This document shows, piece by piece, positions 18,323 through 54,754 of a stretch of 64,000 nt of DNA (positions are counted from its first letter, which is position 1; each line of letters opens with the position of its first letter). Below the pieces are notes generated by a model. The model was not told where the DNA came from, searched no databases, and worked only from the letters and a program-made list of their open reading frames with translations. The translations under genes and the position numbers were made by a program. Source of the DNA: Gracilinanus agilis (Eukaryota); contig NC_058133.1 of assembly GCF_016433145.1 (NCBI RefSeq), forward strand, positions 476,977,330 through 477,041,329. Direction: 5' to 3'.

Positions 18323-26174
<7,852 letters not shown>

Positions 26175-26719
26175 AGCCTGGGAGACCGAAATGTGAAGGG
26201 CCCAAGCGACTGGGAGAGAGAAAGGACCCCAGCGTGGACCAGAAAGGCTGCCGAGACGTGCCTGAGTCAGAACGTACTGCGCTTGCGCACGCGAGAGCAG
26301 GCGGTCGGGCAAGTCTCCTTTGGGTTTCTGACTGGAAAGGTCCTTGGGAAGCGCGTAGCCGAATCTCTAAACGAGAGCCGGAAAAGTAGAATGGTTAACG
26401 TTGTCCGATGTTTACTGGTCAAGCTTCGCGTCTGAGGAAATTTTCCGTTAGACGTCAATCCGCCTCACAGCGCAGTTTGTACAGAGTTGTTTGGGGCCCA
26501 CGATTTTAACAAAAATTTAAAAAGCAGCCTGATTTAGCCGTAAAGCAATCTCAGACCAAGTAGGAGAGCTGGATTCTAGTTGTCCGGTCTCTGGGATCTC
26601 AAGATTCTCCCACCAGGAAGGGGTCTTCCGGACATTAGAAAATTCGGGGACATTCCTCCTTAAAAGATGTAAGGAGACCGACTATCCTCAGCGATCACCT
26701 CTGTTTTAGAGGGCTTAAT

Positions 26720-28440
26720 CAGATATCGAAGGAAGAATGAACCAGATATCATTCTTCGCAAATAACATGGTGGTGTACTTCGAGAATCCTGGAGAATTAA
26801 CTGAAAAATTAGCTGAAATAATTAACAACGTTAGCAATGTTACAGGTTATAAAATAAACCCACACAAATCGCCAACATTTCTATATGTTGCCAACAAAGT
26901 TGAGCAAGAGGTAGACAACGAAGTTCCTTTAAAATCAATAGTAGATAATATGAAGTACTTGGGAGTCAATCTGCCAAGACAAACTCAGGAACTATATGAA
27001 CTCAATTACAAAATTCTTCACACAAAGTTAGAATTAAACAATTGGAAAAATGTCAGTTGCTCATGGGGTGGCTGGGCAAATATAATAAAAATGACAATTT
27101 TACCACCATACCAAACTACCCAAAAATTATTTTATAGTGCTAGAAAAAATATCAATTCATCTGGAAAAACAAACGGCCAAGAATACCAAAGGAATCAATG
27201 AAAACAAAATGGGAAGGAAGGTGGTCTAGCTATAGGTCTTGCTGTACCTACATCTCAAAATGTATCACAGTGGTAATCTTCAAAATAATCTGGTACTGGC
27301 TAAGAAATAAGAATGATAAGTGGAATAAATTAGGTACACACTACCTAGTGATAAGTGACCATAGTAATTTAGTGTTTGATGAATCAAAAGATCCATGCTT
27401 TGGGAACAAGAACTCACTTATTTGACAAAAATTTTGGGGAAAATTAGAAAATGGGATGATGACAGAGACAGGGATAGATGGTCAGTATGGATTCATGATT
27501 TAGACATAAAGGTTGATACCATAAGCAAATTAGGGTAGCATGGAATAATTTATTAGTCAGATTTGTGGATAAGGAAAGAATTTGACCTAATAAGAGATAG
27601 TGTGCATTATAGGATGCAAAATGGAGAATTTTGGTTATACTAAATTAAAAAGGGTTTGTACAAGCAAAACCAATGCAACCAAGATTGGAAGGAAAGCAGA
27701 AAGTTGGGTGAAAATTTTTACAGCAAGTATTTCTGATAAAGGTCTCATTTTAATATATGTAGAGAATGAAATCAAATTTACAAAAATATAAGTTATTTTC
27801 CAGTTGACAAATGGTCAAAGAATATGAACAGGCAGTTTTCAGAGGAAGAAATCAAAGTAATTTTTAGTCATATGAAAAAATGCTCCAAATTAGTCTTGAT
27901 TAGAGAAATGGCCATCAATTGAGGTATGGCTGAACAAGTTGTGGTAAGTGATTGTAATGAAATAGTAGTATGTTATAAGTAATGACAAGCAGAATGATTT
28001 CAGAAATATCTGGAAACATTTACATGAGCTGGTACAAAGTGAAGAAAGCAGAACTAGACTAGCAATATTTTTTGATGAACAACTGTGAATGATATATATC
28101 TTCTCAATAATATAGTGATCCAAGACAATCCCAGAGACTTGTGATAAAAAAAAAAAATGCCATCTCCCTTCAGAGAAAGAACCAGTGGAGTCTGAATACA
28201 GACCAAAACATACTACATTTCACTTCTTTTTTTTTTATTTCTTTCCCAAAATATGGAAAAACTATTTTATAAGATTGCACAGATAAAATCTCTTATCAGA
28301 TAGCTTACCTTCTCAGAATTGGGAGAAGTAGGAGTGAATAAAGGATAAAGGATAGGGAGGGAAAGAATTTGGAACTCAAAATTTTTTAAAAGAAAGTTAA
28401 AAATGTATTTTTACATGTAATTTGGGAAAAATACACAAAT
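26720..28440 (+). mobile_element. L1 LINE remnant (ORF2 RT/C-terminus and 3' UTR)
   Basis: Translation ISFFANNMVVYFENP...VTGYKINPHKS...MKYLGVNLPRQTQELYELNYK...WKNVSCSW is degenerate L1 ORF2, with FADD changed to FANN and frameshifts. Confidence 0.9.
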
Positions 28441-29298
28441 ATTTTTTTAAAAACAAACCAGACAGTTGTATGCTCCACAAAAGTGGTTTTGTAGCTGTCA
28501 CAGATAGTAGTAGGTTACAAATGGAAAAGAAGTTATAGATGGCTAGGTGACTTCCAACATTGTATATTGGTTACATCAAGTTCTGGAACAGTATAAGATT
28601 TCTCAAACAAACCCCACAAAAACTATAACTGAATTATCCTCATAATTAAAAAAACAGAAAAGGAATATTTTTCAGACTGTGACATATTCTACACATTGTA
28701 GGTACTTAATGCATATTAAATTGAATGAACATTGACTATGAGGAGAAGGAACCCTAAATTTATACCCCAAATTTGCCCAGAAGTTGTTGAATGGCAGGAT
28801 GAACTCTGAAGGAACTCTTATTCTGCCAAGTTAATAACATCATAGCAGGAAAGAATTAAGCAAAGAGATGAATACATTCTAGATTATGGGCCACATAGGA
28901 GGATACTAGTGGCTTTGTCAGTTGAGAAAAGAGGTGTTTAGAACACTTCATCCCTTGGATAGCAAGTAGTTTTATGGTGGAGAATATACCCTCTAACCTT
29001 TCCCCTTTCAAAATGCCACTACCTAGAATGGGGAGAGAGGCTAGCTAGTTTTTAAGGAAAGAATGACTTTCAGAGAGGAATGCTGGAAAGCCTAGGTGTT
29101 GTCTGTAAGTACCTTGAGCCATTGGGTGGAGTAGACACAGCAACAGTGAGATCCTGAGATGAGTTAGGGCTGGGGCTTCTGTCCATGTCACAGTGGGATT
29201 GTCTCTGGCCTAGTGGGTCACAATGGTAGGAGGTAGCAGGAGTCTCAGCTCCTCTTTCCTCATCTCACTTTGCCGCTGGGTGGCACTGAATTAACAAA

Positions 29299-31842
29299 CT
29301 GTCGTGTGTCAGGCTGTGCCCCGATACCTTTTCCCTTTCTTATATCAAGAAAGGGAAGAAAAGGAACTATTGTTACCCACCCTGCTCTCCTTTTGCCTAC
29401 CTTGATTACTGTTACACGTACAACTACATTGTCCGGGAGAAGATGCTGCCTTGTTACCCTTGTTTCAAAAGGTAATTAATTCTTTCAAACTTCCTTAGCC
29501 ACAGTTGCTCCTTTAATCTCTATTCTTCCATTGGTATTTCAGATTTCAAAAGAATTTACCAACTTGCAAGGAGTGGGAAAACACTGAAATAGGGTGGGAA
29601 TTTGGGATGCTTCTTCTCTAGAGAACTCTCAGTAATAAAGACGCTAGAATAGAGGACAGCAAATGAGGATTACTATAATAATTTGGGGGAAAGGAGATAG
29701 CACGAGGGGTCCAATGTGCCATATCCCTCCCCACCCCAGCCCCTACCCCATACACAGATGAGCTAATTTAGGCCCCTGCTTCTTAACCAGAACCACCGTA
29801 ACTGAGAGGGATAACCTGACACTCCGACCTCGGTGCTGCCTCCAGTGCTCCTGAGTCCCTAGCAGGCCTCCAGGTGGGCAGAAGCACTGAGCAGGGAGAC
29901 CACGACCAGCTCAAAGAGCTATATTCGGTAAGTGAACTCTAAGCAGGTCACCCTTCCTTCCACCCAGGCTTATTCTCTACAGTGACATCCTAAGAAAATA
30001 GTCAGTTAGAGAAGGGAGAATTAGAATCACAATTTTAGAGTTGTAAGGAAATGTAGTGATCTACTTGAAGCTCATTTTACAAATGAAAAAGCAGGCCCAT
30101 GGAGGAACAATTAAGACTAGAAACCAGGTGTTCTGACTCCCATTGTTTTTTATACTGTCTTTCTTAGTGTGACATGGTTAGTTTTGATTTTCTTATTCAT
30201 AAGAGGGAAGGGAGAGAGAGAAAACAAACTTAAATGATGAAAGAATTAGCAGAGTAGATAGTAAGCATGACAATGCCTAAATGAATAAGCAGAGAGCAGA
30301 AAAAGTTGGCATAATTGCCTTGAAAACAGGACAATATTGCTACATTGGGAAATTTTTTTCTGTTGGAATGATGGTAAAACAAAAGAAGGAATAAAATCTT
30401 CAAGTTCCTGAATTCTACAGGGAAAGATAAGTATTCATTCTTTTTTAGAAGAGAAAGGATAAAATGCTAATGATAAATTGAGGTTAGACAACATGATGTC
30501 TATAGATAATATGATTTTTGAATGATGTCTCTGGAATTAAACGGTACCATGGAATCTTCAATAATGAGATAACCTACATATATCTGGTACCCTCCCTCAA
30601 ACAAAGATTATGGTTTGGAGGAGTAGCAAGTTTGGATAGTAAGATCCAGGAAATTAAAACCTTCTCTACCCTTGGCATTTTTTTTTTCTTTACAGGCTGG
30701 GAACCTGACAGTGCTAGCTAATGAGTCCCTGCTTCACCAGGACCCAGTACAGTTAGATTTCCATTTCCGCCTCACCCCTCAGGCTTCTGTCCACTGGCAC
30801 GGCCTTCTCTGTGACCACCGGCTCTTCCTGGACATCCCCTACCGGGCACTGGACCAAGGCAATCGGGAGAGGTGAGAGTAGGCCCCCTTCCTTATCCTAT
30901 GCTTGATTACTCTAATGGGATAGCCAGGGAATAGTAAGTCAGCTATTTCAGAAACAGTGATGCTGTAGATGTGAAAGACCTTGCAAGGTACATGCACAGC
31001 TTAAATGAGCATGAAAAGGATATTATATGTAAGATGGTACACAGATGGAGCCAATCAGGTTTTCAGAGCATGGCCCCATAGACTAGTCAGTTTTCTTGGA
31101 GCTGGGCTTAAGGTGCACAAAACTATGGGGCCCTTAGGATTCTAGAAATTATGGTAGACCAAGAAGAGGCCTTAGTATAGAAGAATAATATTCTTCCTAA
31201 GAAAGGAAGGGTCTTTGGCATTTTGCTCAGGATAAGCCCAATAACAGCTACAGACCTCAAAGAAATATTCATACTACCAATTTATTTAAGTTGTTCTCTG
31301 GGTCAAGAGGACTAATGGAATTTGATTTTCTCTAACTAGGTCATCACCTCTATGGTTACTTATTCAGTAGCTTGTCTCTTTCTCTGACTCTTAGTTTGAC
31401 AGCAACACTGGAGTATGTGGAGGAGAAAACAGATGTGGACTCTGTGTTTGTGAACTTCCACAATGCTAGGAATGACCGAGGTACTGGGGTTGGGAAGCTA
31501 CCTTGTCCACTCTTCTCACTATTGTTCCTTTTCCTCTGCATTGCTGAGAACATGGGCTTGGGAAGTAATCCTTACTGGGAAAGTTTTCTATCTGTAATTG
31601 AGGGAAGCTGGGAGACAAAATAAGGGTGTGGAGAGGTGGAGGGGAATAAAGAACTTAGTGAGCTCAAAAGAGGTAATTTGCTTTTCCCCTCCCTTACAGG
31701 TGCCTTGCTTCGGGCCTTCAGCTACATGGGCTTTGAGGTGGTTAGACCTGACCACCCTGCCCTACCACCCTGGGACAATGTCATCTTCATGGTATACCCC
31801 CTTGAGAGGGATTGTGGCAACTTACCTAGTAAGCCTTCCTGA
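29299..31842 (+). CDS. OAZ3: Ornithine decarboxylase antizyme 3 (237 aa from CUG via +1 frameshift; 189 aa from AUG 29443)
   Basis: Exons 29299-29471, 29791-29927, 30696-30871, 31395-31480 and 31700-31842. ORF1 (CTG 29299, ATG 29443) ends CLQCS-TGA at 29852-29854. ORF2 in the +1 frame reads ESLAGLQVGRSTEQGDHDQLKELYSAGNLTVL...DIPYRALDQGNRESLTATLEYVEEK...LLRAFSYMGFEVVRPDHPALPPWDNVIFMVYPLERD. Confidence 0.96.
29849..29855 (+). other. OAZ3: Programmed +1 ribosomal frameshift site TCC-TGA-G
   Basis: The canonical metazoan antizyme shift site UCC-UGA sits at the ORF1/ORF2 junction. ORF2 has no AUG until the last exon. Confidence 0.93.
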
Positions 31843-54623: not shown

Positions 54624-54754
54624 NNNNNNNNNNNNNNNNNNNNNNNNNNNNNNNNNNNNNNNNNNNNNNNNNNNNNNNNNNNNNNNNNNNNNNNNNNNNN
54701 NNNNNNNNNNNNNNNNNNNNNNNNNNNNNNNNNNNNNNNNNNNNNNNNNNNNNN
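54624..54754. other. Assembly gap (N run)
   Basis: 131 consecutive N. Confidence 1.

Follow-up and report, generated by a model that had tools for sequence, protein, structure and literature searches.

The 64,000-nucleotide window of Gracilinanus agilis DNA analyzed here (positions are those of the whole window, on the plus strand unless otherwise stated) contains a gene that is, on the evidence of searches made exon by exon, OAZ3, encoding ornithine decarboxylase antizyme 3. The element of interest is the beginning of its first coding exon, where 48 sense codons preceding the older annotated AUG are predicted to be translated from a CUG start codon. The features of this exon are the following:

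29287-29289, plus strand: in-frame TGA, four codons 5' of the CTG.
29299-29301, plus strand: CTG, the proposed non-AUG start codon, in the context aacaaaCTGt.
29299-29442, plus strand: 48-codon N-terminal extension, recognized from its reading frame, the relatives found, their alignment and the selection ratio (omega) of codons 12-48.
29443-29445, plus strand: internal AUG, the older annotated start, whose methionine is invariant in 23 sequences.
29299-29471, plus strand: coding part of OAZ3 exon 1, ending in phase 2, with a GT donor at 29472 (GTAATT).

The anatomy of the exon agrees in each detail with that proposed in a preliminary description of this stretch made from the letters alone. The TGA at 29287-29289 is separated by ATT AAC AAA from the CTG (AAA-CTG occupying 29296-29301), the CTG has an A at -3, and the frame continues through 48 sense codons (LSCVRLCPDTFSLSYIKKGKKRNYCYPPCSPFAYLDYCYTYNYIVREK) to the ATG at 29443, after which only 10 codons remain to the end of the exon. 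There is no ATG, GTG or TTG in the CTG frame between this TGA and 29443, which is why the list of open reading frames supplied with the window misses the frame and, as had also been claimed, holds no entry there. A same-frame AUG further upstream within exon 1 is excluded because of the TGA. The sole match of the extension to the Pfam profiles was a hit to DUF5087 below the cutoff (E 0.015), which was taken as chance.

The gene model comprises five coding exons, whose summed lengths correspond to 237 codons when counted from the CTG and 189 when counted from the AUG; the first open reading frame (ORF1) has 78. The remaining exons, in which P0006 denotes the Monodelphis domestica protein discussed below, are:

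29791-29927, plus strand: exon 2, in which ORF1 ends with TCC at 29849-29851 and TGA at 29852-29854, and the +1 frame is taken up again at GAG 29853.
30696-30871, plus strand: exon 3, in which the antizyme domain begins; identical to the corresponding P0006 residues, with an omega of 0.14-0.17.
31395-31480, plus strand: exon 4, matching positions 47-72 of the Pfam ODC_AZ profile (E 0.032).
31700-31842, plus strand: exon 5 with the TGA stop, matching positions 77-113 of the same profile (E 2.7e-4).

The matches of exons 4 and 5 are colinear on the profile of the ODC antizyme domain (PF02100), each being below the cutoff on its own because each is a fragment, and the domain is carried by the near-identical P0006 and at least 80 relatives. 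Between ORF1 and ORF2 lies the UCC-UGA sequence of a +1 frameshift site, with the +1 frame reading ESLAGLQ... as in P0006. The best matches and the neighboring genes identify the gene as an orthologue of OAZ3 rather than of OAZ1 or OAZ2. The top matches all bear the name antizyme 3, the first antizyme 2 proteins coming no better than E 1e-25. The gene neighborhood is also shared: MRPL9 lies upstream of OAZ3 on the minus strand of the window, and the order MRPL9-OAZ3-TDRKH is common to the koala, glider, turtle and alligator loci, where a KH/Tudor gene is found downstream.

An exhaustive search of 1.84 billion representatives with the exon-1 peptide recovered an entry for the OAZ3 of M. domestica (P0001; E 5.6e-31, 96% identical), followed by the N-termini of three further OAZ3 proteins, two of them eutherian (Lemmus, P0003, and a Logan contig product, P0004) and one from a turtle (P0005), with E-values between 5e-11 and 5e-9. 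One other hit, a repeat protein with KRNY-like repeats (P0002), was rejected as a compositional artefact. P0006, a cluster-mate of P0001, is NP_001278365.2, the 237-residue OAZ3 of M. domestica. It has 235 of its 237 residues in common with the exon translations of the window, the differences being L1M (the record having Met) and D9N. The annotated start of its coding sequence (L001:3001) is the homologous CTG, and the exon structure is the same, in DNA that is only 88-93% identical to the window outside the conserved blocks, which marks the window as belonging to another didelphid. The start of the coding sequence given by NCBI for the hedgehog (L004:2501) is also this CTG.

Conservation of the start codon was assessed at 10 therian loci, namely the window and its counterparts in M. 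domestica, Dromiciops, koala, sugar glider, tammar, Tasmanian devil, bilby, hedgehog and tamandua. AAA-CTG is present at the homologous position in all ten, and nine also have the TGA stop in frame four codons 5' of the CTG, the bilby having TCA. The second in-frame CTG of the window, at 29314, is TCG or TTG in the eutherians, and so is not kept. The CTG at 29299, with its A at -3, is a near-cognate codon kept at this position in a favorable context. Immediately before AAACTG the Australian marsupials and the eutherians have AAG or GAG, a possible splice acceptor, and the window and M. domestica have AAC. Outside the therians, the models of Alligator sinensis (L007:2501) and Carettochelys (P0040) use an ATG of this exon that lies 28 codons further 5', translating as MSQWP...GSLCRWEALPE a block which in mammals is non-coding, and the Chrysemys picta record (L006:4001) starts at a CTG other than the therian one, about 14 nucleotides upstream in homologous DNA. 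From these models, the start of the extension may have shifted during amniote evolution, or the upstream open reading frame of the reptiles may be fortuitous.

The peptide itself is also conserved. In an alignment of 23 sequences the therian members align without gaps from L1 to M49, and the residues S12, L13, G19, N23, P31, Y39, M49 and P51 are invariant throughout, including in turtles, alligator and gecko. On the evidence of this alignment, the core of the extension is older than the mammals. The preliminary description had named an extension of the same length in human and rodent OAZ3, with the SLSYIK, RNY, YCY and REKM residues kept in a gap-free alignment; all of this is seen against rodent and other non-human eutherian sequences. 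At the invariant R22, P31, A33, Y37, Y39 and Y41 synonymous codons vary between species, and the sole indel in a lineage with an intact frame is of 6 nucleotides. Between koala and hedgehog the ratio of nonsynonymous to synonymous substitution rates (dN/dS) is 0.15 in the annotated frame as against 1.58 and 1.42 in the other two, and in deep pairwise comparisons generally it is lowest in the annotated frame. Under a one-ratio codon model (with p against omega = 1), core codons 12-48 in nine amniotes, with the reptiles added, yielded an omega of 0.43-0.55 (p 7e-4 to 9e-3), and exon 3, taken as a benchmark in nine amniotes, the value listed above (p about 1e-19). By these estimates the extension appears to be coding, with a constraint clearly weaker than that on the antizyme domain. 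The comparison with M. domestica alone is uninformative on selection, there being 1 difference in 173 nucleotides and equally conserved flanks.

The extension is already known from other mammals. Passages on antizyme 3 in the study of Ivanov and Atkins (2007; PMC1874602) describe an unexpected conservation of up to 156 nucleotides upstream of the AUG, an absolutely conserved CUG and a predicted extension of 48 residues, with one marsupial gene in the data set and with eutherian mRNAs that include the CUG region. The corresponding section of the review by Atkins et al. (2016; PMC5009743), citing Ruan et al. (2011), states that a substantial share of initiation occurs at the CUG to give an extended product, and that p12, which is translated from ORF1, binds MYPT3 and has an effect on PP1 activity. 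OAZ3 also stands among the non-AUG genes named in a section of PMC9789052 as annotated in GENCODE v35. The CUG start and extension in rodents to which the preliminary description had referred are in keeping with PMC1874602 and PMC5009743. The rat gene is the same gene, with a homologous CUG preceded by AAA, an extension of 48 codons and the same peptide core, and the window shares with it the in-frame stop just upstream, the lack of an upstream AUG, the retained internal AUG and the ending of ORF1 at a UCC-UGA shift site. In contrast to the rodent gene, the window has U rather than C at +4, differs at several residues (for example with YCYTYNY in place of YCYKYR), and lacks the threefold repetition of the shift-site motif seen in rodents, its ORF1 being 78 codons long. 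In the survey part of the 2007 study antizyme 3 is called mammalian, and reptiles, birds and amphibians are given at least two antizymes (PMC1874602). Annotated antizyme 3 proteins are present in turtles, crocodilians, squamates, tuatara, salamanders and caecilians, and no bird is among the matches listed.

Two further conserved features lie in and next to the exon:

29215-29298, plus strand: conserved non-coding block just 5' of the CTG, with GGGTCACAATGG at 29215-29226 and TCTCACTTTGCCGCTGGGTGGCACTGAA at 29263-29290.
29331-29357, plus strand: hairpin within the extension, with a stem of 11-13 base pairs and a loop of 5 nucleotides, coding for SLSYIKKG (z -3.45 for nucleotides 29290-29380).

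The upstream block is nearly invariant in the ten therians and recognizable in turtle and alligator, and is likely a promoter or 5' leader. A GTCACA(A/G)TGG motif occurs twice, at 29185-29197 and 29215-29226, and together with the TCTCACTTTGCCGCTGGGTGGCACTGAA block is conserved from marsupials to turtle and alligator; these might serve as elements of the core promoter or of the leader, and the motif has at its core ACAAT, which resembles a SOX-type site. The hairpin is retained in 10 amniote sequences, mainly through invariance or G-U pairs, and the codons for S12 and L13 are invariant even at their synonymous sites. There is just one compensatory pair, and the structure is hence inseparable from the constraint on the protein. 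The optimal distance of a hairpin from a start codon for enhancing initiation is roughly 14 nucleotides. Here the stem lies 32 nucleotides past the C of the CUG and displays almost no covariation, and no claim is made for it as a downstream initiation enhancer. A short upstream open reading frame in another frame (ATG at 29222 to TAA at 29291-29293, 23 codons, ending 5 nucleotides before the CTG) was likewise discarded, as koala has an early stop in it and tamandua lacks its ATG.

Two marsupial lineages have a broken extension frame. In the Tasmanian devil, the CTG and its context are kept but the 21st codon of the frame that it opens is TAA (KKGN*LNS; L012:1417-1419). The two devil assemblies that carry the protein named NP_001277230.1, GCA_902635505.1 and GCA_048593225.1 (L012:1357-1503 and L008), are identical over 5,245 nucleotides, and both have this stop. 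The curated record of the orthologous Sarcophilus harrisii OAZ3 (NP_001277230.1) has 189 residues from the AUG, consistent with this stop, and a CUG start there would yield merely a 20-residue peptide. In the bilby (GCA_037893015.1, L010:1356-1503), a TAG occurs at codon 6 (L010:1371-1373), and a 1-nucleotide insertion in the A-run at 1409-1421 brings the CTG-ATG distance to 145 nucleotides; this being a single assembly, the insertion might be a homopolymer error. The stops and indels in other marsupials that the preliminary description had named as counting against a coding extension are thus found in these two species. Besides the window, the frame is open in six others, namely M. domestica, Dromiciops, koala, tammar and sugar glider as DNA and wombat as a protein model, with the Antechinus protein model, which has K at the position of the devil stop, as a seventh. 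The devil and bilby lesions differ, which points to lineage-specific loss and is not evidence against coding in didelphids.

The above observations are best accounted for if 29299-29471 is coding exon 1 of OAZ3, with predicted partial initiation at CUG 29299 yielding the 48-residue extension, a reading to which we give a probability of about 0.8. Scanning ribosomes would start partly at this CUG, which is preceded by AAA and by no in-frame upstream AUG, and partly at AUG 29443, the former start adding the 48 residues. Ribosomes from the CUG that terminate at the shift-site UGA would then make an ORF1 product of 78 codons corresponding to rat p12, and those that shift by +1 at UCC-UGA the 237-residue antizyme. 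By analogy with other species and with the literature, the didelphid mRNA would include the CUG and spermatid ribosomes would initiate there.

A number of observations weigh against this reading, and several of them would fit an untranslated 5' leader, in which case the conservation would stem from a promoter, leader or RNA structure and AUG 29443 would be the sole start of OAZ3. The openness of the frame is by itself weak evidence and does not go beyond chance: at least 51 stop-free codons precede 129 of the 2090 ATGs in the window (6.2%), and a second frame over the same stretch, 29270-29479, is likewise open. It is the conservation that exceeds chance. Across seven therians the whole extension has an omega of 0.63-0.69 that is not significantly below 1 (p 0.07-0.11), and codons 2-11 one of about 0.9, which is neutral-like and also not significant. 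The preliminary description had proposed protein-level selection, with dN/dS across therians as its check. On the codon-model estimates such selection appears real yet moderate, being significant (p<0.01) only for the core with the reptiles added and not for the therian extension as a whole. Between marsupials the non-coding flanks, including the DNA upstream, match the extension in conservation, and part of that conservation is accordingly at the nucleotide level; the hairpin and the synonymously invariant S12 and L13 codons point the same way. The base at +4 is T in the window and C in most therians, a C at +4 being noted in PMC3105428. Most marsupial database models have 189 residues and begin at the AUG, and the devil and bilby tolerate an interrupted frame. 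With an alignment of 19 sequences, AlphaFold gave no confident fold for residues 1-96, with predicted local distance difference test (pLDDT) scores below 50 for residues 1-49, and the antizyme domain folded confidently. Nevertheless, a purely untranslated leader appears rather unlikely: it would not explain a frame-specific conservation of more than 300 million years with synonymous changes at invariant residues, an omega significantly below 1 in the core, an indel divisible by three as the only one in an intact lineage, or the reported CUG initiation in rat.

The extension might alternatively be translated but started elsewhere. Other same-frame near-cognate codons, such as CUG 29314, which has an A at -3, or AUU 29290, also follow the TGA, and the near-neutral evolution of the first 10 codons would be in line with such a start. 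Given that CTG 29299 is the only one of these kept at all ten therian loci and that the curated records use its homologue, a start at one of the others is quite improbable. We regard as very improbable the proposal that the AUG comes from a different exon, situated upstream by the CpG island of MRPL9 and spliced in just before the CTG. Automatic models from Antechinus, Perognathus, Microtus, Bos, Marmota, Suncus and Rangifer do join an AUG-bearing peptide to K-L-P-C, and the AG directly before AAACTG in other therians could serve such a junction. However, the upstream peptides so added are unrelated between species, the AAC of the window and M. domestica leaves no splice acceptor in the interval from TGA to CTG, and the stretch of the window that corresponds to the upstream peptide of Antechinus lacks both an in-frame ATG and a GT donor after it.

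Elsewhere in the window, exons of MRPL9 were observed on the minus strand within 20337-26300 (e.g. 25663-25863, 21940-22182 and 20337-20498), and a GC-rich island lies there at approximately 25500-26500. A LINE-like reverse-transcriptase fragment (long interspersed nuclear element; 26737-27201, plus strand) lies between MRPL9 and OAZ3, and a run of 131 N occupies 54624-54754.

In conclusion, the CUG-started OAZ3 extension is already known, in view of the 2007 prediction, the CUG use reported in review, the GENCODE v35 annotation and the curated opossum record, and it adds no new biology on non-AUG initiation. For annotation, the CTG and not the AUG should be taken as the first codon of OAZ3 in didelphids, giving 237 residues as in the curated M. 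domestica record instead of the 189 of most automatic marsupial models. The comparative value of the extension is modest and lies in a core older than the mammals, a constraint weaker than that on the antizyme domain and interruptions in two marsupial lineages. As devil and bilby have broken the frame by different lesions with the CUG kept, it is somewhat more probable than an even chance that the extension is dispensable in some marsupials. If so, the CUG in these species would open a short upstream reading frame, and the animals would amount to natural knock-outs for both the extended isoform and a p12-like product bearing the extension. The two lineages could help to separate the roles of the extended and the AUG-started isoforms in sperm head-tail attachment.

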